A stretch of DNA of 64,000 nucleotides from Macrostomum lignano (GCA_002269645.1 NIVC01000031.1:496001-560000), one strand, 5' to 3'. Positions 22,168-55,656 are shown, counted from the first letter of the stretch. Notes: generated by a model from the sequence alone, not told the origin. A program made the numbers and translations.

Positions 22168-22653
22168 TCACGATGAGGCACTCAGGAAGCTGTGCCCCAG
22201 CAGCTCCGCGGTGTCCGCTCGCTCCCTCGGGTCATAGTCTACGCACCTGAGGTAGAAGTCCTTCAGGCCGGCTGAGAACCCGTCAGCAATCTGAGGCATC
22301 GCTCGCCCTTCGCACCTCAGCACGGCGATCCGGAACTGCTGAACGTTCGCGTCAGGAGGCTGCATGGCCGTCAGCTCATACACGGTGCAGCCGAAGGCCC
22401 ACACGTCGGTCTTGGCTGAGTACGGAATCGATTCGCCATCGCCCATGAACAGCTCGGGCGCCAGGAAGTAGAGGGTGCCTTTGGGATCGACGCCGTCGCT
22501 CAGGTCGCTGGTGCCGACGATCTCCTTGGCGAGACCGAAGTCGATCAGCTTGATGACACCCTTGTTGGTGAGCATCACATTAGAGCTCTTGATGTCACGG
22601 TGCAGGATGGCGCCCTGCGGCTGGCAGTGCAGGAAGTTCAGGCCTAAGCAGAT
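22168..22653 (-). CDS. ANK-kinase copy 1, last exon (kinase C-lobe)
   Basis: Acceptor cctgcag at 22654; [41 protein letters not shown]..; 486 nt, phase 0. Confidence 0.9.
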
Positions 22654-22709
22654 CTGCAGGTGGAGCAGTTTTAAGCAGTCATCAAGTTGGATCTAGCCAT
22701 TCCAGATCC

Positions 22710-22883
22710 CACCCACACTGATCCCACACTGATCCCACACTGATCCCACACTGATCCCACACTGATCCCACACTGATCCCACATTGATTCAACACTCATC
22801 CCACACTCATCCCAAACTCATCCCACACTCATCCCACACTCATCCCACACTCATCCCACACTCATCCCACACTCACCCCACCC
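22710..22883. repeat. 11-bp intronic minisatellite (CCCACACTGAT/CCCACACTCAT)n
   Basis: Shorter versions lie in the same intron of copies 2 (~36955-37040) and 3 (~51405-51455). Confidence 0.9.
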
Positions 22884-22917
22884 ATGCCAGGCAATGCCAG
22901 AGAGCCCAGAGACGCAC

Positions 22918-23305
22918 CTGTCTGGAGAAGTCCCTGACCCCGGACTCCTTGAACGGCTTGTTCTGACGCTGCATCAGCTCAAAGAGGCTGTGACCCGAGA
23001 CCAGCTCGGTGAAGATGTACAGCCCATCCGACTTCTGCTCGCACTTGAGGAACTGCACAATGTTGGGATGCGAGAGTCGCTTGAGGATCTCAACTCCCCG
23101 CTTCTCCATCAGAATTTTTATCTTCAGTTCCTCTGCGTCTTGCTCAGCTTGGCTCATGGGCAGCACCTTGACAGCCACCGTCTGGTTGCGGTCTGTGAGG
23201 GCCTTGAACACCTCACCGAATCCACCAAGGCCGATGAGCTGCTTCTTTTCGTCCTGCAGAATGAAGTCCCAGTCGGTAAAGCTGGGGTCCAGCTGCTTCT
23301 TGGCG
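22918..23305 (-). CDS. ANK-kinase copy 1, kinase N-lobe exon
   Basis: Acceptor ttcccag at 23306, donor CAG|GTGCGT; AKKQLDPSFTDWDF..LIGLGGFGEVFK..VAVK..HPNIVQF; 388 nt, phase 2 to 0. Confidence 0.9.
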
Positions 23306-23617
23306 CTGGGAATATTAGGTAAAGGAATTCAATAAATTTTGAGTTGTTTGAGGCTTTCGGAGTACTTTGGAGTCACTCAGCATTCCGCGGCACAACCCTC
23401 TGCTTCACCTACACTGGCCCCATATTTAAGCGCGGACTCACTGAGTCGCACCTTAAATGCCGACATCTGTACTGTCATATTTTTACCTTCCAAAAACACC
23501 TTGAAATTGGGGCGCCAGGGCATGGTTTAGGGGTGCCATGAAGAGATTGGGGATGCTGTTGACTCCTATCTGATTGAGCTGACTGTCGAGGAGGGAATCT
23601 CCATCGGCGTTGAGCGG

Positions 23618-24424
23618 ATGGTGCTGCGAAGCACATTCGTTCTTATTGCTCCTAGCAGCGAGGAGGACGCTCGGCGGCTGCTCCAGCGGCTACCGACGGT
23701 CTCCTTGGATGCTGACCTTGGTGGAGCTCTTTTTCTTCGCGAGGGCCAGCGTCCAAAGACGATACCCTATGTGGTTTTCGTCCCTGCTAAGAGCACCGCA
23801 GCTGGACCAGACGTTATTCGCCGGGTCCTACTGCGTCTGAACCCCGACCTCCCTGCTAGTGGACTGGTGTATCACCGCAAAGTCCGCAGGGGGGAGACGG
23901 GCAACTCAATTGTCCTCGGCCTTTCCAGCACTTGGGCGAGTCGGTACCCTAATGGATCCTCTTTCCAGCTGGGTGCCCTCAAGCTCAAGTTGCGCCGAGG
24001 AAAGTCTGCCAAAGGGAAGGCTACTGCCAACCCCGGCATCTCCGGCAAGAGCGGGCGCAGTCTAAGGCCCAAGGAAAGGCGCAAGCCGATCCCAAAGCCA
24101 AAGCTGCATCTCGCCCCTCTGCTAGCAGCAGTTCGGCGACCGCGGTAACGGCTCCGGCCGAGCCCCGGGAACCAAACCTGCCAGTCGGAGAAGGAGTTGA
24201 GGACGAGGCCGGGTCTTCGGAATCCGAGCTCTCCTCGGCCACCTTGGTGGGGTCTGAAGGTAAAGATGCAGGTGAGGAAGCTTCCTCCATCCTGTCATCG
24301 GAGCCTGAGGACTCTGCTGGGGGGCCGGTGGGGTGAGGAGGCCATGGACGTCGACCAACTCCCATCTCCCAGTCAAGCCCCAGCGGCCTGGGACGAGGAC
24401 GATCTGTTGTCCAAGTCTCCTTGA
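23618..24424 (+). pseudogene. LINE ORF1 remnant, frameshifted
   Basis: The frame of ORF 23618-24148 is open from the element's 5' end and is followed by acidic, low-complexity pieces in shifted frames up to 24424. Confidence 0.55.
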
Positions 24425-24463
24425 TGGCCCTGGGCTCTAGCCAGATATTGCATTTAATACAGT

Positions 24464-27400
24464 ATGACTAAGCTCCACGCTGCCAAAGGAGCGACATTCT
24501 GTCTGCAAATAAATTTACAGCATTGCGTATCTGCGTCAGTAAATCTGATGAAGATTGCTGAGCTGTACAGGCCAGGCCTCATCCTGATCCAGGAACCCTG
24601 GATGCGCAACGGTAAGTTGCCCAACATTCCCTCTGGCTACTCTGATTTTTATGTGTGTGGCCCGGGGAACAGCCGCCCTAGAGCGGCTATCCTCGCTGCT
24701 AGCCATCTCCAGGCTTGGCTGAGGACTGATCTCTCTGATGGAGACCTTTGCGTCATCCAATCTAATCATTTCTCTCCGCGTACGTGTCTTGTTGCCTCGG
24801 TTTATATCCCAGGCGACAGAGACCCTGCTCCGAGAGTTTACTGCGCCTTGCGCAGTACTGCGAGTCCAGAACGCTGAGCTGTGCTTAGGGGGCGACCTCA
24901 ACGCGCACCACAAGCACTGGGGCAGCAAAGATACCAACACTAGAGGAGAGGAGCTTCTGGCCCTCATCTCTAACACAAACCTCATGCTCTGCAACCGCGG
25001 CAGCACTCCTACCTTTAATAATGGCAGATGGACCGAGGTCCTCGACGCCACACTCGTTACCCCAAGACTCTTTGACAGAGTCAAGGAGTGGAGAGTCTGG
25101 TCTGAGGAGCCCTCCCTGTCTGACCACTGCTTTATCGCCTTTAATATCGCGGACACTAAAACCCAGTCTCCGATCACTTGGAGACGCAATATCCGCAACA
25201 CTGATTGGGCGGCCTACAAGGCTGCCCTTGATCTGCACCTGCAGGAACTCACGGACTTACGTCCGATTGAGACCTGCGAGGATGTGGATCATATGGCTGA
25301 GACGCTGACAGGTTGCATTATTGCAGCCTACGAAGCGGCTTGTCCTGCTCGCGCCTACAGAGGCAAGACCTCGGCGCCGTGGTGGAACCCGGAGCTGGGG
25401 AAACTCAGGCGGAAGGCCAAAAGCCTTCATCGCCGTGCCATGAAGACCGGAAACCCGGAGGACATGGAGCTTTTCCGGCAAGCCTCCCGCAATTTCAAAT
25501 CTGAAGTGCGCAAGGCCAAGGAATGTAAGTGGCGCCAATTCTGCAATGAATTGGATCAAGACAGACCTACTTCTAGGCTTGTCAAGGCCCTTACAATGGA
25601 CAAAATGTCCAAATTAGCCATGATCAAAAAAGATGATGGCTCTCTTACTAAAGACCCTGAAGAAGTGCTTCAGCATATGCTTAGCACATTCTTCCCGAGG
25701 GTACCTACTGCTAGACCGGAGCCCAACCATTCGATGGATGGAGCCACCCTAGCGGCGGGCATTGTCACTGAAGACCTAATCGCTCGTGCGGTCAGAACCT
25801 TCAAACCCTTCAAATCTCCTGGACCTGATGGTATCTACCCTGTTCTCCTTCGTGAAGCAGCCAAGATACCCTCGTTCCTGAGACTCACCCGCAATCTTAT
25901 GCGGGCCTCTATCCAGCTGGGATACGTTCCCAAAAGCTGGACTGAAGCTCGAGTAGTCTTTATTCCCAAACCTGGGAAGGGTGACTACCAAAGCGTCAAG
26001 GCCTTCCGGCCAATTAGCTTAACGTCAGCAATGCTTAAGCTCACTGAGAGGCTTATTCTCTGGCGGCTGCTCTCCTGCGAGCTGACAGCGATGCCCCTCA
26101 GCAATAATCAGCACGCCTTCCGTACCGGGAGGTCGACTGACAGCGCCCTGCATGCGATTGTCGAAAAGATTGAACGGGCGGTACTGGGTGACGGTTACGC
26201 CCTGGCTCTCTTTCTTGACATTGTTGGCGCCTTCGACAACGTTATCTTTGAAGCGTTTCAGAGGGCCCTTCAAAATCGCAAAGCTCATGCTACCCTCATA
26301 CGGTGGATCATGTACATGATCTCCAACCGTACGGTCACTGCCCAACTTCTTGGGCAAACTGCCTCCACCAGAGTCTGTAAGGGTGGACCCCAAGGCGGAG
26401 TCCTCACCCCGACGCTCTGGAACCTGGTCATGGACGCTCTTCTGAGTGACTCCCGACCTGACCCCGTCTTCAAAGTCGGGTATGCTGATGACGTCACGGC
26501 CATTGTGGCAGGACCGTCTCCCAGCACGCTCAGGGATCTGATGCAGAGCTTTATCCGCAAAGCAGAATCCTGGGCCAATGACAATGGTTTGGAACTCTCT
26601 GAGCCCAAAACCGTTGCCATTATGTTTACCAGCAGACTACGCTGGAACATACGTCCTCTGCAGCTCTACGGCAGAGATATTGCCTTCGCGCACCAGACCA
26701 GATGTCTCGGGGTCACACTTGACCACCGGCTCAACTGGTCCTTCCACGTGAAAGCAAAAGCTAAGCGTGCCTCAGCCATCCTGGCCCAGCTCCGACGAGC
26801 ACTTGGCACTTCTTGGGGTCTATCCCCAAAGCGGCTTTGGTGGATCTATACTTCCGTAGTTAGACCTGCCATTACGTACGCCTCTGTTGTCTGGGTTAGC
26901 GCTACCCAGGTCAAAAGCCATGCAGACCTGCTCAACACGATCCAAGGCAGAGCGTGTAGGCTCATCTGCAACGCCACCAGGTCCACGCCCTTTGCTGGCA
27001 TGGGGGCCTTTCTTAATCTTCCGCCTCTTGACCTCTTCATCAGGGGTGAGGCGGCTAGAACGACGCGGCGTCTAATTGATGCCGGCGTCAAATTCATTTA
27101 CATGAGAGCACCTGCTAAGCGGAACCTTGTCCCGCATAGCGATCTGTGCCTCAACTTTCTCAACGAGTGTCAGGCCAATCGCGTCTTCACCGATGGCATT
27201 GCCTCAACGCTCAACCTGAGACAGCGCTACTCCGTAGCTATCGACTCGCGCGATAACATCAATGACCATTGGAACCCTGGTGAGCTTCATTGCTACACCG
27301 ACGGTTCTAAGCAGTCAGCCAACACCGGCTTTGGTGTTGGAATCTTTCTGAACGGGAGGGTCATCGCTACCCACGCTCAATACACTGGGGTCAACTCCAG

Positions 27401-28202
27401 TGTTTTCCAAAATGAAGTTCTGGCCATCAGCTCCTGCACTGCAGAGCTTCTCGCCACTGGCGTTACTGGTAAGAACATCATTTTCCATTCGGACAGCCAA
27501 GCTGCCTTGCACGCCATCAGTGGCTGCAGCACCAACTCTGCTACAGTCCTTGACTGTATCAAACTCCTCAATGTGTTGGGTTCCGCCAACAAAATTACCC
27601 TTAAGTGGGTTCCGGGGCATGTGGGGATCCGAGGAAATGAGTTGGCTGACACCCTTGCAAAAGTTGGTGCCTCCGGCTCCTCTCTCGGCCCCGAACCTCT
27701 TGTCCCGATTCCTGGCTGTGTCATCGACTCGCGCATCAAAGCGTGGATCAGGACTCAGCACCGCTCGACTTGGGCGAACCGCACGAACTGCAGGCAATCC
27801 AGAGGCGCTGTCCCTCAGCCCTCTCACCAGTTCCGGAAGCTCCTCTTGCGCCTCTCGCGCAGAGACATCCGGGCTGCCACCATGACCCTCTCTGGTCACG
27901 GCTGCTTCTCCAGGCACCAGTACCTGCAGGGCAACGCCACCAACGCCACCTGTAGTTTCTGCAACTCAGGTGACGAAACCGCTGAGCATTTCGTCAGCAT
28001 CTGTCCCGCCTTCACGCGGGCCAGACTCACTTACCTCGGGCCACACACATCTATTACTGAAGCGTGCAAACCCGAAAACTTTAATCAGCTCATGCGCTAC
28101 CTTCGGGCCACCCGCAGGGCTGAACTCTCCTTTCCAGAGAGCACCATAGCTGCTGGCGACACTGGGGGACCTCCCTGGGCGGCGCCAACCCTCCGTCCAT
28201 AG
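24464..28202 (+). CDS. pol: LINE ORF2: AP endonuclease, reverse transcriptase, RNase H, C-terminal CCHC; frameshift near 24820-24880
   Basis: QINLQH/LIQEPW, GGDLNAHH, SDH, FLDIVGAFDN, GPQGGVLTP, GYADD, YTDGSK, KWVPGHVGIRGNELAD, CSFC..ETAEHFVSIC. Confidence 0.93.
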
Positions 28203-28479
28203 CGACGCGTCGGCCGTTCAGGGACTAGCGGAATGGGCGCCCGCGCCTTCCCGCTGTGTCCCCTCCGGGACAGCCCTGCAGCTAAGTCAAGATTGGGGAT
28301 GCCATAGGAAGTTTGGGGGTGCCATGAGGAGCTGCCCCAAGAAATTCGTGACGCCCTTGCTTGACTGCTGCGCTGCTGAGAATTTCAGGGCGCCGATCAT
28401 CAAAGCGCAATGAATTTTCGCCAAAAATATTTTCAGCATTTTAGCGTCAGTCATGCAGCATCTCTCTGCCAGGACTCAC

Positions 28480-29615
28480 CCAGCGTGAGGCTGAGAGGCT
28501 TCGAGCAGCCGCTGTGTGGAGGAAATCCAGGCCTGCTTTGCTGACTGGTCATTGAGTAACCAAAATCTCTCAACAACATCAGCCGGTGTTATGCCCCTGT
28601 TGCTCTTCAAACTGAACATTTCGGCTCCGATTTGGTCAAAAATGAACTGAAGAGAATCGACTGGCTGATGCTTAGCGGCCAAATGGACGGCCGTGTCACC
28701 GTCTCTGTCAGGAACTGTGAGACAGTCGCTGCCGAGCTCATTCACCAGCCACTTCAGATTTGAGCTGTCGGACTTCTGAGCAGCAAAGTGAAATGCTGTT
28801 CTATCACACTTTGTCTTCAGCCGAAAGCAGTCAGTTCCGATCTGTCTCTTGATCCACTCCAGCGACTCGATGCCTTGATACAGAGCGGCCAAATGGACGG
28901 CTGTGTCACCTTCTTTGTCAGGAACTGTGAGACAGTCGCTGCCGAGCTCCTTCACCAGCCACTTCAGATTTGAGCTGTCGGACTTCTGAGCAGCAAAGTG
29001 AAATGCTGTTCTATCACACTTTGTCTTCAGCCGAAAGCAGTCAGTTCCGATCTGTCTCTTGATCCACTCCAGCGACTCGATGCCCTGATGCCTAGCGGCC
29101 AAATGAACGGCCGTGTCACCGTCTTTATCAGGAGCTGTGAGACAGTCGCTGCCGAGTTCCTTCACCAGCCACTTTAGACAAGAACTGCTTTTTCTGTTCA
29201 TAGCGGCAAAGTGAGCGACTGTCTGCCCCCACTTATCAACAATTCTCAGACAGCCTCTGCCTCCCTTCTCTTTAACCAGCTTCATCCAAGACTCGTCCTG
29301 ATGCTGGGCTGCCAAGTGCACTGGAGTCTGATCACTGTCATTTATATGTGTCAGACAGCCGGGTCCGAATCTGTCAATCAGCAGCTCCAGGCAGGACGAA
29401 CTCACCGGCTTGCAGGCCACGTGATGGGCCAACGGCATTTTAAGAAGCTTTCTAAAGAAAAGGTTTTGCATTCCGAAGCCGCCCACCTTCAGCTCGATGT
29501 TGCTGCCGACCTCACCGCACAGTCGCTGCAGCTCCTCGCTGTCTCCAGCCTCCAGCGCCGCTCTCAGCTTCCGCTCCATCTCTGTTGCCTTGGCTACACT
29601 TCGAGTGTTCCCCAT
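28480..29615 (-). CDS. ANK-kinase copy 1, ankyrin-repeat exon
   Basis: ORF 28476-29615 with repeated TAVHLAA/TAFHFAA ankyrin motifs; its apparent stop lies inside a GG|GTGAGT donor at 28479 (phase 2). Confidence 0.9.
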
Positions 29616-30029
29616 GCCGGTTTCTCTTTCCTAGCAGCGCTTCTCTGCGGATCTGCTGTCTGCCGCAGCTGTTCCACACGGCTTCAAATTGAGTGCTTTG
29701 CTCTTCTTCAAGCAAATTTGCCTGCCAGCTCAGCAGCAGCAGCAAAAGTGATCTGTCCTTAAAAGTAGCATGTCTTGGTTCAACTCTGACGCACTTGCAT
29801 TTCGAAAATAGGCGGCACGGCAGTCTTAAACGATAGGGCAGTGTCGGTGTGCAGCAGCACCACTGTGCGATAAGCGGAGTTCTGAATAAGATAAGCAGGA
29901 GTTTTACCTGAGAGTCGCATAGCGCTGTAAACATTAGGCTGTGGCATTCCGAGTTTTGTTGTAATGTTGGAAATTTGACTCGTTTAATTTATACAGCAAA
30001 TGGGGGATGGGGGGAAATGGCAACTTAAA

Positions 30030-31513: not shown

Positions 31514-31616
31514 TGATTTTTGGACTGAACTTTTACTAGCAACTGTTGGAGCAGGAAGCCCAGTGCTTACTCAAGAGTTCTCAGTTAAATATACAGACAC
31601 CGTTTAGCTTGCCGTG

Positions 31617-31815
31617 ACCCACTGTGTCCTGACTTGCCGTGACCGGTGTGTCCTGACTTGCCGTGACCCGCTGTGTCCTGACTTGCCGTGACCCGCTGTG
31701 TCCTGACTTGCCGTGACCCGCTGTGTCTTGACTTGCCGTGACCCGCTGTGTCCTGACTTGCCGTGACCCGCTGTGTCCTGACCTGCCGTGACGTGACCCA
31801 TTGTATCCTGACTTG
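31617..31815 (-). repeat. Inverted copy of the 25-bp minisatellite, ~8 units
   Basis: Reverse complement of the unit at 19637-20370. Confidence 0.95.
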
Positions 31816-31856: not shown

Positions 31857-33234
31857 AGGAGTCTCCTGTTAGCCGTGGGAGTCTCCTGTTAGCCGTGGGA
31901 GTCTCCTGTTAGCCGTGGGAGTCTCCTGTTAGCCATGGGAGTCTCCTGTTAACCCTGGGAGTCTCCTGTTAGCCATGGGAGTCTCCTGTTAACCCTGGGA
32001 GTCTCCTGTTAGCCATGGGAGTCTCCTGTTAGCCATGGGAGTCTCCTGTTAGCCATGGGAGTCTCCTGTTAGCCATGGGAGTCTCCTGTTAACCCTGGGA
32101 GTCTCCTGTTAGCCATGGGAGTCTCCTGTTAGCCATGGGAGTCTCCTGTTAACCCTGGGAGTCTCCTGTTAGCCATGGGAGTCTCCTGTTAGCCATGGGA
32201 GTCTCCTGTTAGCCATGGGAGTCTCCTGTTAGCCATGGGAGTCTCCTGTTAACCCTGGGAGTCTCCTGTTAGCCATGGGAGTCTCCTGTTAGCCATGGGA
32301 GTCTCCTGTTAGCCATGGGAGTCTCCTGTTAACCCTGGGAGTCTCCTGTTAGCCATGGGAGTCTCCTGTTAGCCATGGGAGTCTCCTGTTAGCCATGGGA
32401 GTCTCCTGTTAGCCATGGGAGTCTCCTGTTAACCCTGGGAGTCTCCTGTTAGCCATGGGAGTCTCCTGTTAACCCTGGGAGTCTCCTGTTAGCCATGGGA
32501 GTCTCCTGTTAGCCATGGGAGTCTCCTGTTAACCCTGGGAGTCTCCTGTTAGCCATGGGAGTCTCCTGTTAGCCATGGGAGTCTCCTGTTAGCCATGGGA
32601 GTCTCTTGTTAGCCATGGGAGTCTCCTGTTAACCCTGGGAGTCTCCTGTTAGCCATGGGAGTCTCCTGTTAACCCTGGGAGTCTCCTGTTAGCCATGGGA
32701 GTCTCCTGTTAGCCATGGGAGTCTCCTGTTAACCCTGGGAGTCTCCTGTTAGCCATGGGAGTCTCCTGTTAGCCATGGGAGTCTCCTGTTAGCCATGGGA
32801 GTCTCCTGTTAGCCATGGGAGTCTCCTGTTAACCCTGGGAGTCTCCTGTTAGCCATGGGAGTCTCCTGTTAGCCATGGGAGTCTCCTGTTAGCCATGGGA
32901 GTCTCCTGTTAACCCTGGGAGTCTCCTGTTAGCCATGGGAGTCTCCTGTTAACCCTGGGAGTCTCCTGTTAGCCATGGGAGTCTCTTGTTAGCCATGGGA
33001 GTTTCCTGTTAACCCTGGGAGTCTCCTGTTAGCCATGGGAGTCTCCTGTTAACCCTGGGAGTCTCCTGTTAGCCATGGGAGTCTCCTGTTAGCCATGGGA
33101 GTCTCCTGTTAACCCTGGGAGTCTCCTGTTAGCCATGGGAGTCTCCTGTTAACCCTGGGAGTCTCCTGTTAGCCATGGAGTCTCCTGTTAGCCATGGAGT
33201 CTCCTGTTAGCCATGGGAGTCTCCTGTTAGATGT
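31857..33234. repeat. 20-bp minisatellite (GTCTCCTGTTAGCCATGGGA)n with an AACCCT variant, ~68 copies
   Basis: Exact 20-bp register with two interspersed variants. Confidence 0.97.
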
Positions 33235-33639
33235 CCACACGCAGGTCATTACCTTTCCTATATAAAGCTTTGATACATCGTTGGAACTCTGTAATAGCTA
33301 TAAAAATTTTTTTATTCTCCCGTACTGAACTGTTGAAAGCTGGAAAATGCTTACTCTCAAACATCTAACAGGAGACTCCCATGTCTAACAGGAGATTTCC
33401 ATGTGGCGCTTGGTGAAGGCACATACTTTGAAAACTAAATAAAAAAATAAAATTTCTCCCATGATGAATCTCCTATAGTTTTCCCATATTTACTCCAAGA
33501 AAAAATGCGAGGCAACAAAACTTGATAAATGAGATGACCGAGCTCAACTTTTGCCACTCTTGGATGTACCTCCAACCGGCCCGAGATACCGGTCCACACC
33601 TGGAGACAGCGGGGTTTAACAAAAGACATCGGCGCCCAG

Positions 33640-34260
33640 CAAGAGACCCATAGGGTTGCGGCAAGCAAGAGACCCTTAGGGTTGCGGCAAGCAAGAGACC
33701 CTTAGGGTTGCGGCAAGCAAGAGACCCTTAGGGTTGCGGCAAGCAAGAGACCCTTAGGGTTGCGGCAAGCAAAAGACCTTTAGGGTTGCGGCAAGCAAGA
33801 GACCCTTAGGGTTGCGGCAAGCAAGAGACCCTTAGGGTTGCGGCAAGCAAGAGACCCTTAGGGTTGCGGCAAGCAAAAGACCTTTAGGGTTGCGGCAAGC
33901 AAGAGACCCTTAGGGTTGCGGCAAGCAAGAGACCCTTAGGGTTGCGGCAAGCAAGAGACCCTTAGGGGTGCGGCAAGCAAGAGACCCTTAAGGTTGCGGC
34001 AGGCAAGAGACCCTTAGGGTTGCGGCAAGCAAGAGACCCTTAGGGTTGCGGCAAGCAAGAGACCCTTAGGGTTGCGGCAAGCAAGAGACCCTTAGGGTTG
34101 CGGCAAGCAAGAGACCCTTAGGGTTGCGGCAAGCAAGAGACCCTTAGGGTTGCGGCAAGCAAGAGACCCTTAGGGTTGCGGCAAGCAAGAGACCCTTAGG
34201 GTTGCGGCAAGCAAGAGACCCTTAGGGTTGCGGCAGGCAAGAGACCCTTAGGGTTGCGGC
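33640..34260. repeat. 26-bp minisatellite (GCAAGCAAGAGACCCTTAGGGTTGCG)n, ~24 copies
   Basis: Visible periodicity with no spacers. Confidence 0.96.
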
Positions 34261-36413: not shown

Positions 36414-36898
36414 TCACGATGAGGCACTCAGGAAGCTGTGCCGCAGCAGCTCCGCAGTGTCCGCTCGCTCCCTCGGGTCATAGTCTACGCATCTGAGGTA
36501 GAAGTCCTTCAGGCCGGCTGAGAACCCATCCGCAATCCGAGGCATCGCCCGCCCTCCGCACCTCAGAACGGCGATCCTGAACTTCTGAACGTTCGCGTCA
36601 GGAGGCTGCATGGCCGTCAGCTCATACACGGTGCAGCCGAAGGCCCACACGTCGGTCTTGGCTGAGTACGGAATCGAGTCACCCTCGCCCATGAACAGCT
36701 CGGGCGCCATGAAGTGCCAGGTGCCTTTTGGCGGGTTGCCTGCGCTCAGCCGCAGGTGGTGAATATCTCCCTGGCCAGACCGAAGTCGATCAGCTTGATG
36801 ACTCCCTCGTTGGTGAGCATTATATTTCCGCTTTTGATGTCTCGGTGCAAGATAGCGCCCTCCGGCTGGCAGTGCAGGAAGTTCAGGCCTGAGCAGAT
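36414..36898 (-). pseudogene. ANK-kinase copy 2, last exon with a 1-bp deletion near 36749
   Basis: [21 protein letters not shown], then frameshift; 485 nt versus 486 in copy 1; the APE-containing part continues in another frame. Confidence 0.85.
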
Positions 36899-37075: not shown

Positions 37076-37459
37076 CTGTCTGGAGAAGTCCCTGACCCAG
37101 GACTCCTGGAACGGCTTGTTCTGACGCTTCATCAGCTCAAAGAGGCTGTGACCCGAGACCAGCTCGGTGAAATGTACAGCCCATCCGACTTCTGCTCGCA
37201 CTTGAGGAACTGCACAATGTTGGGATGTGAGAGTCGCTTGAGAATCTCAACTCCCCGCTTCTCCATCTCGACGGCTTTCTGCAGCTTCCCCGATTGTCCG
37301 GTGTCGCTCAGGGGCAGCACCTTGACAGCCACCGTCTGGATACGATCTGTAAGGGCCTTGTACACCTCACCGAATGCACCACGGCCGATGAGCTGCTTCT
37401 TGTTGTCCTGCAAGATGAAGTCCCAGTCGGTGAAGCTGGGGTCCAGCTGCTTCTTGGCG
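37076..37459 (-). pseudogene. ANK-kinase copy 2, kinase N-lobe exon with a 1-bp deletion near 37171
   Basis: Acceptor ttttcag at 37460; LIGRGAFGEVYK, VAVK; GGTGAAATG versus GGTGAAGATG in the paralogs; 384 nt versus 385 in copy 3. Confidence 0.85.
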
Positions 37460-38996: not shown

Positions 38997-41819
38997 GGCT
39001 ACACTGCTTCTCCTAGCAGCACTTCTCTGCCGATCTGCTGTCTGCCGCAGCTGTTCCACACGGCTTCAAACTGAGTGCTTTGCTCTTCTTCAAGCGAATT
39101 TGCCTGCCAGCTCAGCAGCAGCAGCAAAAGTCCCGCTGTCACGGACTGAAATCTCTGAGCTCTCTCTGTGCAGAGAAATTTGTTTAAATGGACTGAGGCG
39201 GATAGTAGTGTGGGTTAGTTGAACGCTGACGCACTTTCCCTAGGGAGATAGGCGGCAATGTTAAAGATTAGGGCAGTGTCGTTGTGGAGCTGCACAACTC
39301 TGCGCTAACCGGAGTTATAAATATGATAAGCGTAATCGAGTTATAAACAAGAGGTGTACTCGTATAGTTTTGTAGACGTTAGTCTCTGTCACTGCACGTA
39401 CTGTTTTAATGTTGAAAATTTGACTCGTTTAATTTAGACAGCAAATAAAAACCTATTCATATGGAAGCCTCAGTAGCTATAAATATACCTGCTTAACGAG
39501 CTATTTGAAAACCCAGCCTAGCATTATGCCTGCAGAGTGTGAAGTGCTATGCATTTGGAGTGAGACGTACCAATGTAACCAACCAAGCCTTTTTCCCAGC
39601 ATCCTCCCTCCGGCACTCACCCCACTCCGCCATAGATATACTAGCGCAAAGGGAGCAGCTTTGAAAAAAGTATTTGCGAATCTGCGAAAGACGATTCTGT
39701 GAGGCACGTACGTTAGGGTAGCCAAAATTCTAAAGACAGAATTTTTTTGCAATAATGAAGCAATAAGGCAGCGTCATCAGCCTCAAGCCTTTAGTTCCCA
39801 GCTTCAACCTCAATATGCGTCAGTAGGCGAAACTGAAAGAGGTAAACCGCTCCCTCGTGAGGCCGCTCTAAGCAGGGAAACTAAGGTGGTGAAGTTAGGC
39901 TTCGACAAGTTCGTCGAAGTCAGACAAAGAATAATTTGGTTTAAGCGACTGCCAGAGGACTGTTGTGAGGAGTTCGTGAAACTCATGCACCCTGCCCCTG
40001 CCTTCGCTCATGAGGCAAAAACGTGGGAAGCTTCCAGCTGGATGACAAGTTAAGTAATGAAGTACGAGCTGAGCTCATCTGACACTGATGAAGATGATTT
40101 TGACACCGTGAAGCTACCAGTCAAGACTGAACTGAATGAGAGCAGAGAGGATGCCCGCTAACCAACAGAGCTGACGATCGTTAACCAGCCGGTGACTTCA
40201 ACGCCCTCAGATGCCCTCAGCCGATGCTGGGAACATCCCTGCCAGAGGACACGGACTTGCAAGAAGCTCCGGTGTGGTACCGATTTTGGACTCGTGCGGC
40301 TGCAACAAACAACGTCAGGAAACGAAAGCAACGTCCAGGAAGAATGCGGTCAAGAGGCCAATATGGATGCCGAACTAAGACAATGAGGATGAGTGAAGTT
40401 CTTTCTGAATGACAGCACCTATTTCGAAGTATTCTACTACAGTAAATTCTCTTCGTGTGTGTGTGTGTATGCTCGCCTTAATTCGTTCTTATATCAATTT
40501 TCATGATACTACACAATATGTTACTAAAATACACTGCTCTTCTATTAAAGGTCATCTGTCGCAGTCTTTGAAGCATTTAAGAAAGAAATCTGTCTTGTCT
40601 TACTTGAATTTTAAGTGGGTGGAAAAGATATCACCTTTCACCCCGAGCAGCCCAAGCAGCAATTTTTCTGGTTGCAACGGACTTCTAAATGAGGGCTCGA
40701 TGTGGGCTCGAAAACAAGGCATTAAGTCGGATAAAAATCACATAAGAGTTGGATTATCGAACATTAAACAGAAATTAGGCAAAGTGGCTCGCTTAATGAA
40801 AAGTAGATAAATTGAATTGAATAAAAGTAGAAAAAGTAGATTATTGAACCCAAACAGTATATATGGTGAGTGGGGAGAAGTATGAAAGTACGAGTACATG
40901 TAATTTTGATGGTTTAAAAACTTGTACATATTAATCGAAAGTAGAAGCATTGGTAGGGGAAGAATGCATTTCGGTTTCGGTTACCAATAAAAAAAAACTT
41001 CTCTCCACTCACTATATATACTGTTTGCGTTCAATAATTTGGTTCAAATAAATTTCGACCCTGAAGATTGTTGGACGAAATCCATCGGCAACTCAAATAA
41101 ATAACTAAAACTTAATGTTAATATTGAACTATATCAACAGTATGAGTACAATATGAGTATATGAATATATGAATATGAATATACTACTATATATTGTACT
41201 CATTGTTGTTCGAGCTATAAATGATCAGTGAGAACCATAGGAATTAGAAATTAGCAGAGAATAAGTTGCACAAAGAAGTTAAAGTAAAACAGCGCCGAGC
41301 AAGGCGAGCTTAGCTTAGAAGTACAAACGGTAGAAGTGAAAGATCGTCTAAATCGGACGATTAGAGGTAAGTAGCGGGGACCATGAGCATGATAAGAATA
41401 GAACAGCCACCCTCCATTCCAGATACCAGGCCAGTCGGTGCGGTGCCAGGCAAAACAGGTGAGATAAGCGAAGTCAGTTCTGGTAAGTGTGAAAATTGGC
41501 CGACTGGAGAGGAAGAAGCAGCAGCCACCCCAACGCCGATGAGCAACCCCGAGGAGCATAGCAACCAAGGGGCTGGACTGGACCGGCGGTCTGATGCGCG
41601 CACAAGACTTCAGTCTGACTGTCCCTAATCGCTCTAACTTAACCTAGACAAAATAATTACTGATAATAAAAAATTATCTCGCCCCATAGCAACGTACTAA
41701 TTTATTGTAAAACCGTTTGAATGTGTTTGTTTTTGAGCCCGGGCGTTGCTAACCACAAAGGAACCCTCCCCCTCCAGCAGCAGGGGACGAAAAGTTTAGG
41801 CTCTGTGTAGCAGTCTTGC

Positions 41820-46961: not shown

Positions 46962-47574
<613 letters not shown>

Positions 47575-48499: not shown

Positions 48500-49325
48500 G
48501 CAAGTCAGGACACAGCGGGTCACGGCAAGTCAGGACACAGCGGGTCACGGCAAGTCAGGACACAGCGGGTCACGGCAAGTCAGGACACAGCGGGTCACGG
48601 CAAGTCAGGACACAGCGGGTCACGGCAAGTCAGGACACAGCGGGTCACGGCAAGTCAGGACACAGCGGGTCACGGCAAGTCAGGACACAGCGGGTCACGG
48701 CAAGTCAGGATACAGCGGGTCACAGCAAGTCAGGACACAGCGGGTCACGGCAAGTCAGGACACAGCGGGTCACGGCAAGTCAGGACACAGCGGGTCACGG
48801 CAAGTCAGGACACAGCGGGTCACGGCAAGTCAGGACACAGCGGGTCACGGCAAGTCAGGATACAGCGGGTCACGGCAAGTCAGGACAAAGCGGGTCACAG
48901 CAAGTCAGGACACAGCGGGTCACGGCAAGTCAGGACACAGCGGGTCACGGCAAGTCAGGACACAGCGGGTCACGGCAAGTCAGGACACAGCGGGTCACGG
49001 CAAGTCAGGACACAGCGGGTCACGGCAAGTCAGGACACAGCGGGTCACGGCAAGTCAGGACACAGCGGGTCACGGCAAGTCAGGATACAGCGGGTCACAG
49101 CAAGTCAGGACACAGCGGGTCACGGCAAGTCAGGACACAGCGGGTCACGGCAAGTCAGGACACAGCGGGTCACGGCAAGTCAGGACACAGCGGGTCACGG
49201 CAAGTCAGGACACAGCGGGTCACGGCAAGTCAGGATACAGCGGGTCACGGCAAGTCAGGACAAAGCGGGTCACAGCAAGTCAGGACACAGCGGGTCACGG
49301 CAAGTCAGGACACAGCGAGTCACTG
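48500..49325 (+). repeat. 25-bp minisatellite, ~33 copies
   Basis: Same unit as 19637-20370; followed by a ~400-bp block similar to 20440-20860. Confidence 0.97.
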
Positions 49326-50823
49326 CAAGCCAAACGGTGTCTGTATACGAGCTATTTACGAGAACTCGTATTTTTGAGAACTCTTGAGAAAGCACTGGAT
49401 TAGTCAGTCCAAAAAATCAGTCCAAAAATCAAATACAAAAATCAATGCCGGAAAAAAGCGCCGAACCGGTGGCTGAAAATGTGAAAAATTCTCGGCAACA
49501 AAAAATCTGGAGTCGGCATTGAGCAGTTTGAGCAGATTAGGGAAATTGTGATTGGCTCTGTGCCAGAGTTTGATCAGCTTAAAACTGAAATAGCACTCGA
49601 GTCAGCACAAAAAAGTCTCATTGATTGAAAGGAGCAACCGGTTAAACAAACCCGGAAGTCAAAAAAAAATTTTTTTTCGAATCGCAACTAAATAAACAAA
49701 ACTGTACTAGAATAATTAACCTAAGCAGCGGATAGCAGCAGGAAAATCGATAGACAAAACGATACTAACTCAAAATCTAAGCCGTTCGAATAAAGAAAGC
49801 AGTCGGACAAACAAAAGATGTGGTTAAACAAAAAGTGTAATTATGCTTTGTCGCGCACTTTTGCAGTACGAGTGCACCCGTCCTCCAAACTGTCTGAGCC
49901 TACCAAGCGTCCCATTTTTTCGCTGTTTACGCGAGTCAACCCCTTGTGTGTGTCTCAGACAGCTGGCTTAAACCACTTTTCTTTATTGCTGCTTACTTGT
50001 TTTGTAGCTGCTTTTGGGTGGTTGGTTGGGGTTGGGGTGCGGCTGGCGGCGGCTTTTTTAAGTACGCTCGTAGACCCCCAACCGTATTACGCGGCACTGG
50101 CTTGGTGTTTTGTGTTTGCCGCGTTGCTGATTGGCTGCGGCCAGTTTTGCCCTTTGTTGTTATCGTGTCTGTGATGGGCTGGTCTGGGCGACCATTCGGC
50201 TGGGTCGCTGGTGGGGAGCTAGGTTGGAGGGTTTGTGGCCTTCCCCCTCCGTAGGCAGTGGCTTTAGCGGCTCCCTCTTGATGTGCCTCTCTCGATCGCT
50301 TCTCTCTCCCTGCCTCCCCGCTCTGCGCACAAGACAGTCCCTTACTTCCAGATCCGCTACGGTTTGTGAAGCAAATAAACCCTCAGTTCACGTCAGCCTC
50401 TACAGCTAACCAAGTAATTCCGTCATTCGGTTGGCAGAAGAAATTGATAGTCCGAGTGACCTAACGCCGTCCTAAGTTAGACATATCGATACTGGATTGC
50501 GTCATCTGTACGCGAGCCAGAGCGTTCCGATCACCGCTTCCCGACGCGTGGGAAGGTATCATGGGTGCGTCCCGACGCTTTAGACGCTGGGAAATTGTAA
50601 GCACTCCTTGGCGACCCGTGCGAGTGTACTAGTAGTGTACCCTGTGTCCGCTACAGATCCCGTAGGCTAGGAATTCAGGGATACAAAAATTAGATAAACA
50701 AAAAGAGCAATCAGATAAGCAAGGGCATTAGATAAAGAAAAAGGGACAACTAATTATCAAATTAATTATCTAATTCAATAATTAACAGGCAACTTTCGGT
50801 GTCAGCAAGCGAAAAAGACCGCT

Positions 50824-51351
50824 TCAAGAGTCGTTCCGCTCTCTCACAGCCCGTCGCTCGCGCAGTCGCGATGAGACTCTCAGGAAGCTGTGCCCCAGCA
50901 GCTCCGCGGTGTCCGCTCGCTTCCTCGGGTCATAGTCTACGCACCTGAGGTAGAAGTCCTTCAGGTCGGCTGAGAACCCGTCCGAAATCCGAGGCATCGC
51001 CCGCCCTCCGCACCTCACGACGCCGATCCGGAACTGCTGAACGTTTGCGTCAGGAGGCTGCATGGTCGTCAGCTCATAAACGGTGCAGCCGAAGGCCCAC
51101 ATGTCGGTCTTGGCTGAGTACAAAATCGAGTCGCCCTCGCCCATGAACAGCTCGGGAGCCATGAAGTAGGAGGTGCCTTTAGGATCGACGCCTGTGCTCA
51201 GGCCGCAAGTGCCGACGATCTCCTTAGCGAGGCCGAAGTCGATCAGCTTGATGACTCCCTCGTCGGTGAGCATTATATTTCCGCTTTTGATGTCGCGGTG
51301 CAAGATGGCGCCCTGCGGCTGACAATGCAGAAAGTTCAGGCCTGAGCAGAT
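50824..51351 (-). CDS. ANK-kinase copy 3, last exon (kinase C-lobe)
   Basis: Acceptor attgcag at 51352; [26 protein letters not shown]; 528 nt, in frame. Confidence 0.92.
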   Translation of the reverse strand: MCSGLNFLHCQPQGAILHRDIKSGNIMLTDEGVIKLIDFGLAKEIVGTCGLSTGVDPKGTSYFMAPELFMGEGDSILYSAKTDMWAFGCTVYELTTMQPPDANVQQFRIGVVRCGGRAMPRISDGFSADLKDFYLRCVDYDPRKRADTAELLGHSFLRVSSRLRERRAVRERNDS

Positions 51352-51479: not shown

Positions 51480-51864
51480 CTGCCTGGAGAAGTCCCTGAC
51501 CTCGGATTCCTCGAACGGCTTGTTTTGACGCTGCATCAGCTCAAAGAGGCTGTGACCCGAGATCAGCTCGGTGAAGATGTACAGCCCATCGGACTTCTGC
51601 TCGCACTTGAGGAACTGCACAATGTTGGGATGCGAGAGTCGCTTGAGGATCTCAACTCCCCGCTTCTCCATCTCGACGGCTTTCTGCAGCTTCCCCGATT
51701 GTCCGGTGTCCCTCAGGGGCAGCACCTTGACAGCCACCGTCTGGTTGCGGTCTGTGAGGGCTTTGTACACCTTGCCGAATCCACCACGACCGATGAGCTG
51801 CTTTTTGTCGTCCTGCAGGACGAAGTCCCAGTCGGTGAAGTTGGGGTCCAGCTGCTTCTTGGCG
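51480..51864 (-). CDS. ANK-kinase copy 3, kinase N-lobe exon
   Basis: Acceptor ttttcag at 51865; LIGRGGFGKVYK, VAVK; donor CAG|GTGCGT; 385 nt. Confidence 0.92.
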
Positions 51865-51922
51865 CTGAAAACATGAGGTCAAGGAATTCGATAAATTTGA
51901 GTTTGCTTGGGCTAATGTACCG

Positions 51923-53030
51923 CCTCTTCGTCAGGAGAGGCGGCTATAACGACGCGGCGTCTACTTGATGCCGGTGTCAAATTCCTTTACATGAGGGCAC
52001 CTGCTAAGCGGAACCTCGTCCCGCATAGCGACCTGTGCCTTAACATTCTCAATGTGTGTCAGGCCAATCGCTTCTTTACCGATGGCATTGCTTCAACGCT
52101 CAACCTGAGACAACGCTACTCCGTAGCTAACGACTCGCGCGATACCATCAATGACCACTGGAACTTTGCTACACCGACGGTTCTAAGCAGTCAGCCAACA
52201 CCGGCTTTGGTGTTGGAATCTTCCTGAACGGGAGGGTCGTCGCTACCCACGCTCAGTACACTGGGGTCATCTCCAGTGTCTTCCAAAATGAAGTTCTCGC
52301 CATTAGCTCCTGCACTGCAGAGCTTCTCGCCACTGGCGTAACCGGTAAGAACTCATTTTCCATTCGGACAGCCAAGCTGCCTTGCACGCCATCAGTGGCT
52401 GCAGCACCTCTCGGTCCCCGAACCCCTTGTCCCGATTCCCGGCTGTGTCATCGACTCGCGCATCAAAGCGTGGATCAGGACTCAGCACCGCTCGACTTGG
52501 GCGAACCGCACGAACTGCAGGCAATCCAGAGGCGCTGTCCCTCAGCCCTCTCACCAGCTCCGGAAGCTCCTCTTGCGCCTCTCGCGCAGAGACATCCGGG
52601 CTGCCACCATGACCCTCTCAGGGCACGGCTGATTTTCCAGGCACCAGTACCTACAGGGCAACGCCACTAACGCCATCCGCAGTTTTTGTAACTCAGGTGA
52701 CGAAACCGCTGAGCATTTCGTCAGCATCTGTCCCGCCTTTACGCGGGCCAGACTCACTTACCTCGGGCCACACACATCTATTACTGAAGCGTGCAAACCC
52801 GAAAACCTTAATCAGCTCATGCGCTACCTCCGGGCCACCCGCAGGGCTGAACTCTCCTTTTCAGAGAGCATTTTAGCTGCTGGCGACACTGGGGGACCTC
52901 CCTGGGCGGCGCCAACCCTTCGTCCATAGCGACGCGTCGGCCGTTCAGGGATTTGTGGAATGGGCGTTCGCACCTTCCTGCTGTGTCCCCCCCCGGGACA
53001 GCCCTGCAGCTAAGTCAAAAAGAAGTCAAG
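51923..53030 (+). mobile_element. 5'-truncated, internally deleted copy of the 23557-28289 LINE family in intron 2 of copy 3
   Basis: High similarity to ~27030-28289, with ~150 bp of RNase H missing near 52410; tail TAAGTCAAAAAGAAGTCAAG; no clean TSD found. Confidence 0.92.
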
Positions 53031-53082
53031 AGCTACTTGGTGGGGCTATCTGAGTACTTTGGAGTCACTCAGCCTTCTGCGT

Positions 53083-53602
53083 TATCACCCTTCTGCGTCA
53101 CCACCCTTCTGCGTTATCACACTTCTGCGTCACCACCCTTCTGCGTCGCCACCCTTCTGCGTCACCACCCTTCTGCGTTATCACACTTCTGCGTCACCAC
53201 CCTTCTGCGTCGCCACCCTTCTGCGTCACCACCCTTCTGCGTCGCCACCCTTCTGCGTCACCACCCTTCTGCGTCACCACCTGCGTCACCACCCTTCTGC
53301 GTTATCACCCTTCTGCGTCACCACCCTTCTGCGTCACCACCCTTCTGCGTCGCCACCCTTCTGCGTCACCACCCTTCTGCGTCACCACCCTTCTGCGTCA
53401 CCACCTGCGTCACCACCCTTCTGCGTTATCACCCTTCTGCGTCACCACCCTTCTGCGTCACCACCCTTCTGCGTCGCCACCTTTCTGCGTCACCACCCTT
53501 CTGCGTCACCAGCCTTCTGCGTTATCACACTTCTGCATCACCACCCTTCTGCGTCGTTACCCTTCTGCGTCACCACCGTTCTGCGTCACTACCCTTCTGC
53601 GT
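53083..53602. repeat. 16-bp intronic minisatellite (GTCACCACCCTTCTGC)n, ~32 copies
   Basis: Visible periodicity. Confidence 0.95.
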
Positions 53603-53632
53603 AACCAACTGTTATTTCGAACGCGGATTCAC

Positions 53633-53767
53633 CCAGTCTCAGGCTGTCTGCCCTCGGATGCAGAAGTCGGTCCAGCTGCTGACCTGACGCAATCTTGTGC
53701 TCGAACCTCATAATCGCACTGCTCATATGCGTCCGATGAGGTAGGCCGGGAACGCAGAGCTGCAGAG
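53633..53767 (-). CDS. ANK-kinase copy 3, 135-nt linker exon (SAALRSRPTSSDAYEQ..EGRQPETG)
   Basis: cccccacag acceptor, GG|GTGAAT donor, phase 2 to 2; both ends are homologous to the copy 2 linker exon. Confidence 0.75.
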
Positions 53768-54499
53768 CTGTGGGGGCGAATAAGGGAGGCAGCTGCTGAC
53801 TGCCCCAAAATATCAGATACCAAAGCCCCGAGAGGTAAACCATTTCAAAGGAAAATTTCTTCCCAAGTAAAACACCTGTAGCTCTGAGATCAGCCATCAG
53901 ATTCGAAACCCTCCCATTGCGGCAGCTGCTTGAGCTCTCACGCAACAGAATGACAGGCCAGCAGGACTTCAAAATGCTTCACCGATTTTCTGAACTCCCA
54001 GTGAGTTTTCAGAGCTTCAGAACTGAGAGAATGCGAATGACAGGGTATCGAGTTTCACAGTGCCACTTCCTGCTTTGCTAGCTTTTGGATTACAGGTAGC
54101 CAATATAAATTAAGTGCCAACAACCCAGAATATTCAAGTAGCTTCCTCGAAGAGGTTCCAACCCGTTACACATAAAAGGGTTGGCATGATGGCACTTGAA
54201 CTGGTTACAGAAGCTCCTGTAGATTGAACTCTGGATGGTGGCTCTATATGGAGATTGGGGGCGCCATGAGGATTTACTCTGTAAAACAACTTGGCTTTAC
54301 CATTGCACTAGCTGAAAACCCTTACATAAAAAACTGTTACTGAGTCGACTTCTAAATTTGACAGCAATATTTTATTGATAGAGAGAAGGGACAAAACGCA
54401 AAGTACGATCGAACTTACGCTACGACAGCTTTATAGTACCACCCCATTGAATTTTCGCAAAAAAGCTTTTCAATACTTTATTTGTCAGTCAGGACTCAC

Positions 54500-55656
54500 C
54501 CAGCTGAGGCGGCAGTCGGCCCTGAGCTACCAGCGGGAGGAAGAAAGGCTTCGAGCCGTTGAGTAGAGGAAATCCAGGCCCGCTTTGCTGACTGGTCTGT
54601 GCGGCACCGATCACTCTCAACAACATCAGCCGGGGTTTTCCCCTTGTTGTTCTTCAAACTGAACATTTCGGCTCCGATTTGGTCAAAAATGAACTGAAGA
54701 GAGTCGACTGGCTGATGCTTAGCGGCCAAATGGACGGCCGTGTCACCGTCTTTGTCAGGAACTGTGAGACAGTCGCTGCCGAGCTCCTCCACCAGCCACT
54801 TCAGATTTGAATTGTCAGACTTCTGAGCAGCAAAGTGAAATGCTGTTCTATCACTCTTTGTCTTCAGCCGAAAGCAGTCAGTTCCGATCTGACTCTTGAT
54901 CAACTCCAGCGACTCGGTGCCCTGATGCTGAGCGGCCAAATGGACGGCCGTGTCACCGTGTTTGTCAGAAACTGTGAGACAGTCGCTGCCGAGCTCCTTC
55001 ACCAGCCACTTCAGATTTGAATTGTCAGACTTCTGAGCAGCAAAGTGAAATGCTGTTCTATTCCACAGTCCTCCTTTCAGCCGAAACCATTCAGTTCCAA
55101 TTCGTCTCTTGATCAATTCCAGAGACTCGATGCCCTGATACAAAGCCGCCAAATGGACAACTGTGGTACCATTTTCGTCAGGAACTGTGAGACAGTCGCT
55201 GCCGAGCTCCTTCACCAGCCACTTTAGACAAGAGTTGCTTTTTCTGTTCATAGCGGCAAAGTGAGCGACTGTCTGTTTGCAAAAACCGACAATTGTCAAG
55301 CAGTCGCTGCCTCCCTTCTCTTTAACGAGCTTCATCCAAGATTCATCCTGATGCTGGGCAGCCAAGTGTATTGGAGTCTCACCGACATCCCAAAAACTGC
55401 TATCATTTTTGTTTTTCAGACAGTCGGGTCCGAATCTGTCAATCAGCAGCTCCAGGCACGACAATCTCACCGGCTTGCAGGCCACGTGATGGACCAGCGG
55501 CATTTTAAGAAGTTCTTTCAAGGGAAATTCTTGCTTTTCGAACCCGCCCACTTCCAGCTCGATGTTGCTGCCGATCTCACCGCACATTCGCTGCAGCTCC
55601 TCGCTGTCTCCAGCCTCCAGCGCCGCTCTCAGCTTCCGCTCCATCTGTGTTGCCAT
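54500..55656 (-). CDS. ANK-kinase copy 3, ankyrin-repeat exon
   Basis: Likely start GCCATGG at 55656 (MATQMERK); donor GG|GTGAGT at 54499. Confidence 0.9.

Follow-up and report, generated by a model that had tools for sequence, protein, structure and literature searches.

We analysed a stretch of 64,000 nt from the flatworm Macrostomum lignano (NIVC01000031.1:496001-560000; hereafter the window, with positions counted from its first letter) and find that this repeat-rich eukaryotic DNA carries three tandem genes in which an ankyrin-repeat (ANK) exon is spliced to the exons of a protein kinase. The best overall explanation, at a probability of roughly 0.6, is that these are tandem ANK-STE kinase genes in which a variable ankyrin recognition surface would control the attached kinase. 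The gene-structure part of this explanation is practically certain, and we give its mechanistic part, which is inferred, about an even chance. Each protein consists of an N-terminal cap, an array of about seven ankyrin repeats that a single large phase-2 exon encodes, a disordered linker of short length and a C-terminal Ser/Thr kinase of the STE group encoded by two exons. The linker can include an optional cassette exon, the proteins are predicted to be cytoplasmic, and the kinase, judged by its motifs, appears catalytically competent.

Spliced ankyrin and kinase exons in three tandem genes

Performing tblastn searches, we found exactly three ANK-kinase copies in the window, arranged in tandem and all on the minus strand. 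Their long ankyrin open reading frames (ORFs; 28476-29615, 37851-39059 and 54496-55719, minus strand) all finish in GCTGG/GTGAGTCC, the slash marking the exon-intron border, and intron bases 2-4 make up the TGA. The first intron base lies at 28479 in copy 1, 37854 in copy 2 and 54499 in copy 3, and the donor reads GG/GTGAGT. No in-frame ATG precedes the Gly-rich loop in the kinase exons, which follow polypyrimidine-AG acceptors, the AG ending at 23306, 37460 and 51865 in copies 1, 2 and 3, respectively. The second kinase exon of each copy follows a short intron with CAG/GTGCGT and TGCAG/ borders, and linker exons of 87 nt and 135 nt, phase 2/2 with AG and GT borders, are found only in copies 2 and 3. 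When the exons are joined, copy 1 yields an open frame of 2010 nt and copy 3, read from the ATG at 55656, one of 2205 nt; the joined length of copy 2 is 2098 nt and becomes 2100 nt after repair of two 1-bp deletions. Frameshifts affect copy 2 in this haplotype, whereas the other two copies are intact. An earlier reading of the window, made without database searches (the sequence-only reading), had proposed these donors, acceptors, phases and coding lengths, and all of them check out.

The same reading had singled out the stop codon inside each donor. The observation holds, but it is not a special feature, because the donor GTGAGT or GTAAGT, when its intron is in phase 2, necessarily reads G/TGA or G/TAA. 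Such stops recur at the linker-exon donors and in an ANK-caspase paralog described below (CC/GTAAGT). A regulatory role of the in-donor TGA was rejected, as this codon arises automatically whenever a GTRAGT donor opens a phase-2 intron.

The three copies differ in their ends and in their linkers. Exon 1 of copy 1 (28480-29615; this and all exons below are on the minus strand) encodes the N-terminal cap and a seven-repeat ankyrin array, starts with MGNTRS (ATG at 29615-29613), ends in phase 2 at GG/GTGAGT and gave a 100% tblastn match. Intron 1 (23306-28479, 5174 nt) contains an inserted retrotransposon and what is left, in decayed form, of the linker exon, which copy 1 has lost along with its acceptor AG. 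Exon 2 (22918-23305), entered through a phase-2 acceptor and left through the donor CAG/GTGCGT, encodes the kinase N-lobe (GLGGFG, VAVK), and exon 3 (22168-22653) encodes the C-lobe up to the TGA at 22170-22168. Within 29560-29640 (minus strand), a 23-bp insertion created the new upstream ATG that gives MGNTRS, an N-myristoylation-type start (MGxxxS), and the ancestral ATG, still the start of copies 2 and 3, is mutated to AAG in copy 1. This start suggests a paralog-specific localisation through membrane targeting.

Copy 2 starts with MATEMEQ in its ankyrin exon (37855-38996), continues through the 87-nt linker exon (37579-37665), which is found in a transcript-derived protein, and ends with two kinase exons (37076-37459 and 36416-36898). 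Each of these carries one of the 1-bp deletions, between 37172 and 37171 and between 36749 and 36748, respectively. Copy 3 comprises an ankyrin exon with the start MATQMER (54500-55656), the 135-nt linker exon (53633-53767), predicted by homology with that of copy 2, a kinase N-lobe exon (51480-51864) and a kinase C-lobe exon with HRDIKSGN (50824-51351). The usual stop TGA of the family has become CGA in copy 3, so that 14 residues (RLRERRAVRERNDS; 50824-50868, minus strand) are added before a new stop at 50826-50824.

We also checked the gene models against database proteins. The copy 1 model matches GenBank BOX15_Mlig032061g1 (P0011) at 99.4% identity over 669/669 residues, and copy 2 with both frameshifts repaired matches BOX15_Mlig031600g2 (P0007), whose 699 aa correspond to 2100 nt including the stop codon. 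These two entries are the same genes as copies 1 and 2 or near-identical copies of them in duplicated blocks. The GenBank annotation of the Mlig_3_7 assembly derives from a genome-guided RNA-seq transcriptome built with StringTie, TACO and TBONE (PMC5730564); therefore, the ANK-to-kinase junctions of copies 1 and 2 have transcript support. We rejected separate ANK and kinase genes on this ground, as the transcript-derived proteins cross the junctions exactly as predicted. The fusion of an N-terminal ANK array to a C-terminal kinase, as the sequence-only reading had it, is thus borne out by the joined frames, the Pfam domains and both proteins. Its description of the family as hidden did not survive, since GenBank/UniProt already holds entries, built from RNA-seq-guided transcripts, for two of the three genes. 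Both are unnamed there ("hypothetical protein"), without a described function or family.

The window is collinear with two other Mlig_3_7 contigs, which hold the same genes in the same order with the same exon structure. NIVC01000368.1 (L001) is mostly 92-99% identical to the window, and about 98-99% identical from the copy 1 ANK exon through copy 2; NIVC01003511.1 (L002) is mostly 95-99% identical. This collinearity fits the 180 Mb of blocks duplicated at 95% or more that were reported for M. lignano, a hidden polyploid (PMC5730564). Compared with the gene copies on these contigs, the window adds a 4.7-kb retroelement in the copy 1 intron and shows a different frameshift pattern. Copies 1-3 themselves differ pairwise by 13-18% in DNA, with a synonymous divergence (dS) of 0.15-0.28, and by this measure they are diverged tandem paralogs, which upholds the tandem expansion proposed earlier. 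We rejected the idea that the three copies are haplotigs or an assembly artefact, as they lie on one sequence, differ to this extent and keep their order on two other contigs.

The lesions are distributed reciprocally among these blocks. The copy 2 deletion at 36749/36748 (GGCTGAGC versus GGCTTGAGC in the intact copy 2 of L002 and GGCCTGAGC in copy 3) is common to the window and L001, both of which have an intact copy 1. On L002, the source of P0007, copy 2 is intact, and copy 1 carries a 16-bp deletion in its ANK exon (L002 19357-20465 versus window 28480-29615). The deletion at 37172/37171 lies in a T run (ATTTC versus ATCTTC or ATTTTC) and is seen in the window only. Sequencing error as the source of the copy 2 frameshifts was partly rejected: the second site is shared with an independent contig, whereas the first is unique to the window and falls in the T run. 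The 16-bp deletion in L002 is not error-like.

A STE-group kinase in a large Macrostomum family

Several ANK families of Pfam match the proteins (E=1e-15 to 1e-28), with Ank_2, Ank_4 and Ank_5 at E=1e-22 to 1e-28, and each protein has seven TxxHxAA anchors, as expected of ankyrin repeats. Pkinase (PF00069) matches with E=1e-56, covering positions 3-263 of its 263-position profile, and beats PK_Tyr_Ser-Thr by 190 to 140 bits. The catalytic signatures GxGxxG, VAVK, the alphaC Glu, HRDIKxxN, DFG, APE and DxWxxG are all present, the motifs being recognisable in each of copies 1-3, and 13 diverged paralogs, some of them only 40-50% identical, keep G, K, HRD, N, DFG and E without exception. By these intact motifs, the domain is classed as an active eukaryotic protein kinase. 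The Pfam scan found no TIR, Death, CARD, NACHT or other immune-signalling domain, which leaves the proteins outside the NLR, TLR and death-domain families. It likewise found no RNase domain, the proteins stopping 5-20 residues after kinase subdomain XI, and no Peptidase_C14 match in copies 1 or 3. An Rfam scan of the window gave zero matches.

Searching the Protein Data Bank (PDB) sequences with a single kinase domain, we obtained ASK1/MAP3K5 as the best match (E=2e-38; 135.7 bits versus 127.7 for SLK), followed by SLK, STK25, MST4, MST3, LOK, MEKK2, NEK1 and TAO3. A profile of 13 family kinase domains ranked SLK (194 bits), MST3 (190) and LOK (180) highest, with STK25 also ahead of ASK1 (171), and PAK1 (170), MEKK2 (169) and NEK7 (168) close behind ASK1. 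Performing Foldseek with the kinase, we obtained ASK1 (template modelling (TM) score 0.82) together with LOK at the top, then SLK and MST3. Among the 60 PDB matches listed in the single-sequence and profile searches, none is a TKL kinase; STE-group kinases and NEK1/NEK7 appear instead. Sequence, profile and fold matches to the PDB all place the kinase in the STE group and not with TKL or IRE1-like kinases, in agreement with the earlier assignment. The narrower label "MAP3K-like" is not established, since STE20-type kinases (SLK, MST3) score about 20 bits above ASK1 and MEKK2 in the profile search; STE stands, and the MAP3K part divides between ASK1 at the top by single sequence and SLK/MST3 at the top by profile.

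The AlphaFold2 model of P0011 has a mean predicted local distance difference test (pLDDT) score of 83. In this model, the helices of the N-terminal cap are followed by an ANK solenoid (pLDDT >90 to about residue 350), a capping helix (357-374), a disordered stretch (375-382) and then the kinase fold. Over the whole length, Foldseek returned only RNase L (TM 0.25, 14-16% identity). RNase L (PDB 4O1O, 6M13) shares the order of N-terminal ANK and C-terminal kinase fold and is the only solved structure aligned over the whole length, yet at this TM score its domain arrangement is not superposable on the model. In RNase L, however, the kinase fold is that of an inactive pseudokinase related to IRE1, and a ribonuclease domain comes after it, whereas the window proteins end at a STE-type kinase with all motifs and have no KEN ribonuclease after it.

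Other kinases resemble the family in part. The STE20 family (SLK, MST3/STK24, STK25, MST4, LOK) and the MAP3Ks (ASK1/MAP3K5, MEKK2) match the kinase domain at 27-30% identity and share its HRDIKxxN and GTxxFMAPE motifs; however, none of the named STE kinases has an N-terminal ANK array, no one subfamily is orthologous, and NEK7 scores nearly as high (168 bits). ILK, TNNI3K and the plant ANK-Raf-like kinases share the order of ANK then kinase. Their kinase domains are of the TKL group, that of ILK being a pseudokinase, whereas the window family has intact catalytic motifs and falls outside the ILK/TKL type. The ANK-STE kinase looks like a fusion independent of the ILK, TNNI3K and plant types. 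ANK and kinase are also combined in RIPK4 and ANKK1, in reverse order. In Giardia, 133/198 Neks carry 1-26 ANK repeats, and ANK deletion shifts their localisation (PMC3218828). The Giardia ANK-Neks are likewise a lineage-specific, fast-turnover kinase expansion with variable-length ANK arrays, but they are protist proteins with the kinase N-terminal and the ANK repeats C-terminal, and most are catalytically dead. What sets the present family apart is the combination of a STE kinase, restriction to one flatworm genus, paratope-like hypervariability and an ANK exon in common with caspases.

A search of 5.8 billion proteins gave as close relatives only about 33 M. lignano proteins, most of them annotated ANK + Pkinase and named "hypothetical protein" or "Protein kinase domain-containing protein". 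These searches against databases and Pfam, which the sequence-only reading had proposed, returned the ANK + Pkinase architecture with a kinase of the STE group. An exhaustive phmmer scan of 1.84 billion cluster representatives, followed by local re-scoring, gave about 40 proteins with the ANK-then-kinase order, and the architecture is present in about 30 M. lignano protein clusters. All relatives with a closely similar kinase that were traced to a source are from M. lignano, except one 877-aa protein from the Logan transcriptomes (P0136; 36% identical to copy 1, on 3.1-3.2-kb contigs of SRR28338164 and SRR28338163), which may be a family member outside this species. In other non-Macrostomum ANK-kinases, e.g. 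of Caenorhabditis angaria, the kinases are TKL-type or weakly similar. Tandem clustering is not universal in the family, as the P0001 and P0003 loci are single-copy within ±10 kb.

In the supplementary table of Brand et al. 2020, the OrthoFinder group OG0000013 holds 73 genes from four species, M. lignano, M. hystrix, M. spirale and M. pusillum (PMC7336406). We found listed in it Mlig032061, Mlig024086, Mlig020446, Mlig008815, Mlig013667 and Mlig028886, which are 72-99% identical and closest to copies 1-3. In that table the group is neither specific to testis, ovary or tail nor annotated as neoblast or germline; in two species it is marked "up in regenerants versus adults", the social-environment contrasts give mixed signals, and the proteins diverge by 1.05 on average (PMC7336406). 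We found no gene-level expression for the Mlig IDs in the main texts searched or in the supplements of PMC5730564, PMC5946080 and PMC12896417, and our literature search found no paper discussing this ANK-kinase family. By these searches, the family is large, Macrostomum-specific and publicly catalogued yet undescribed, and its lineage specificity, claimed earlier, is supported by the four-species orthogroup and by the scan, in which the close relatives traced to a source were from M. lignano but for one transcriptome protein.

A variable ankyrin surface and its possible role

Each ANK exon contains a 210-bp tandem unit that corresponds to 70 aa, i.e. one A-type and one B-type repeat; in copy 1 exon 1 this two-ANK unit is present in 2.4 copies, 94% identical. 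The paralogs range from 669 to 840 aa, and their lengths differ by whole 70-residue units. Across 54 repeat units of 11 paralogs, nearly all variability falls at four positions, 2, 3, 5 and 13 counted from the conserved Asp. These are the positions of the randomised concave-face paratope of designed ankyrin repeat proteins (DARPins), corresponding to residues 46, 48, 56, 57, 78, 79, 81 and 89 of DARPin G3. As a ratio of nonsynonymous to synonymous rates (dN/dS) computed with hypervariable sites picked from the data is circular, the analysis was redone with the positions fixed a priori. The ratio of nonsynonymous to synonymous differences per site (pN/pS) was 1.30 at the a-priori binding positions and 0.31 in the rest of the array, a roughly 4-fold difference, and none of 5000 random position sets (0/5000) reached the observed pN. 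Both the ANK framework, with a dN/dS of 0.30, and the kinase, with 0.29-0.45, are under purifying selection.

The same ankyrin module is found on caspases. An M. lignano protein (P0026) combines a caspase p20 domain with an N-terminal cap and an alternating A/B ANK framework like those of the ANK-kinases, and its array is 46% identical to that of the ANK-kinases over 312 residues. This array is encoded by a single exon with a phase-2 end (CC/GTAAGT), and the caspase exon begins in phase 2; the gene adjoins a second ANK-caspase gene, the tandem pair lying at 1-1498 and 10001-12175 of NIVC01000874.1. The ANK-caspases thus share with the window genes the ANK framework, the cap, the single phase-2 ANK exon and tandem duplication, and differ in their effector, which is a caspase p20 domain instead of a kinase. 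Since the exon phases match, exon shuffling of effector domains behind one recognition exon is plausible. A published account treats ANK-caspases as a clade specific to platyhelminths and essentially restricted to parasitic species, and notes an M. lignano caspase with a kinase-like prodomain (PMC11463336). The pair in free-living M. lignano may extend this clade.

We propose that the ankyrin solenoid's concave face would act as a variable recognition surface for a protein or small ligand. Binding would recruit, relieve or dimerise the attached kinase, which would then autophosphorylate and start downstream signalling. Different paralogs would recognise different partners, and the sister genes would carry the same recognition module on a caspase instead of a kinase. 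This scheme is modelled by analogy on RNase L, which senses 2-5A through its ANK domain, and on the STE20 and MAP3K kinases, which are activated by induced proximity. Several results weigh against it. The excess of dN/dS (omega) over 1 at the binding positions is not significant (Fisher p=0.08-0.25); the hypervariability is therefore accounted for equally well by relaxed constraint and by positive selection. The predicted TM score of the P0011 model (0.55) makes the relative orientation of ANK and kinase, on which autoinhibition and dimerisation would depend, uncertain. The best database match of copy 3 is only 79% identical, and its model, with the junctions and especially the 135-nt linker exon, is a prediction by homology. 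Expression evidence is at the level of the orthogroup and mixed.

One could take the continuous frames as coincidental and the region as separate ANK and kinase genes, or as pseudogene and transposable-element (TE) debris. Each ANK ORF does have its own stop codon, copy 2 is frameshifted in the window and the region is rich in TEs and satellites. This account is effectively refuted for copies 1 and 2 by the GenBank proteins that span the junctions, and the kinase exons lack a start of their own upstream of the Gly-rich loop. The dN/dS of about 0.3 in framework and kinase, the catalytic residues kept in paralogs 40-50% identical and the recurrence of the architecture in about 30 clusters also argue against it, and we hold it to be extremely improbable. 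The ANK array could instead be a targeting or scaffolding domain that places a STE20-like kinase at the cytoskeleton, membrane or cilia, and the expansion would then stem from subfunctionalisation, or from drift close to neutral, in a genome rich in duplications, as with the Giardia Neks. An omega compatible with 1 at the variable positions, the large duplicated blocks of the M. lignano assembly and the MGxxxS start gained by copy 1 alone would all fit scaffolding, as would the altered Nek localisation after ANK deletion in Giardia (PMC3218828). However, the extreme conservation of the framework, with replacements limited to the paratope-equivalent positions, resembles a diversification of partners more than drift, and the coupling to caspases points to a signalling or death decision and not to anchoring. 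A targeting or scaffolding role seems unlikely to us.

A more specific sub-case of the proposed mechanism, suggested already by the sequence-only reading, is an innate-immune or non-self receptor cluster, in which the ANK arrays would detect pathogen or foreign molecules and trigger kinase or caspase signalling with an NLR-like logic of interchangeable effectors. Several observations would fit such a role: replacements concentrated on the binding surface (omega about 1.3), the repeat-number variation, reciprocal pseudogenes and TE churn typical of arms-race loci, and the fusion of the same ANK module to caspases that are themselves tandem. The orthogroup is very large and divergent (1.05), not gonad-specific and up in regenerants in two species, and the sole full-length structural analogue, RNase L, is an antiviral sensor. 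On the other side, the Pfam scan detected none of the TIR, Death, CARD and NACHT domains, the same evolutionary signatures occur in reproductive, chemosensory and cytoskeletal families, and the regeneration signal, seen at orthogroup level, stands beside mixed signals in other contrasts. An immune role of this kind is, in our judgement, unlikely.

Repeats around the genes and meaning of the family

The insertion in copy 1 intron 1 is a 4.7-kb non-LTR (long terminal repeat) retrotransposon, a long interspersed nuclear element (LINE), at 23557-28289 on the plus strand, antisense to copy 1. Its intact ORF (24738-28202, 1154 aa) encodes endonuclease, reverse transcriptase (RT) and RNase H, and it is flanked by a perfect 13-bp target-site duplication, GCATCCCCAATCT. 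The site is empty in L001 and L002; the insertion is polymorphic and, because of these empty sites on two other M. lignano contigs, looks recent, and the element may still be active. Another member of this LINE family, truncated at its 5' end (51923-53018, plus strand) and 91-95% identical to 27032-28290, lies in the second intron of copy 3, in a region that corresponds to the copy 1 intron. The ANK-kinase family is changing fast, through tandem duplication, exchange of double-ANK units (70 residues) by unequal recombination, intronic TE insertion and allele- or block-specific pseudogenisation.

One 25-bp minisatellite with its flanks occurs downstream of copy 1, downstream of copy 3 and in the interval that separates copies 1 and 2, and by this recurrence it is part of the duplicated unit; minisatellite coordinates are 19637-20374, 31608-31792 and 48500-49329, and also 20840-22091, 31858-33230, 33638-34260 and 53064-53607. 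Other long minisatellites, with 16-26-bp units in up to 69 copies, fill intergenic and intronic space. A BEL/Pao-type LTR retrotransposon at 4324-11198 (minus strand) has gag-like DUF1759, Peptidase_A17, RT and integrase domains, and the 99% identity between its 316-bp LTRs (4324-4639 and 10885-11198) marks it as a recent insertion. A degenerate non-LTR RT/RNase H fragment lies at 15634-18567, and strongly strand-skewed low-complexity satellites with a GC skew of -0.5 to -0.8 lie at 12573-13973 and 58000-60000, e.g. a purine-rich array reading (EERRG)n.

In summary, an orthogroup that ranks among the largest in Macrostomum proves to be a coherent family of ANK-STE kinases, one of whose members, copy 3, is missing from public annotation. 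The duplicated blocks differ in which paralog is intact, and this matters for the design of knock-outs and RNA interference (RNAi) in a hidden polyploid. If the family consisted of ordinary scaffolded kinases, the value of the finding would be limited to annotation. A bolder reading, which we regard as quite unlikely, is that Macrostomum has a new class of intracellular surveillance receptors in which a hypervariable ANK exon was shuffled onto a STE kinase or a caspase and diversified by birth and death. If true, this class would be a repeat-based sensor system that follows the logic of NLRs or RNase L with different parts. M. lignano is a transgenic model of regeneration and stem cells for which RNAi, transgenesis and in situ methods exist, and flatworm stress and immune signalling are little known. 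Dozens of kinases on variable ankyrin surfaces, with a module shared with caspases, make a testable candidate for a lineage-specific sensing system.

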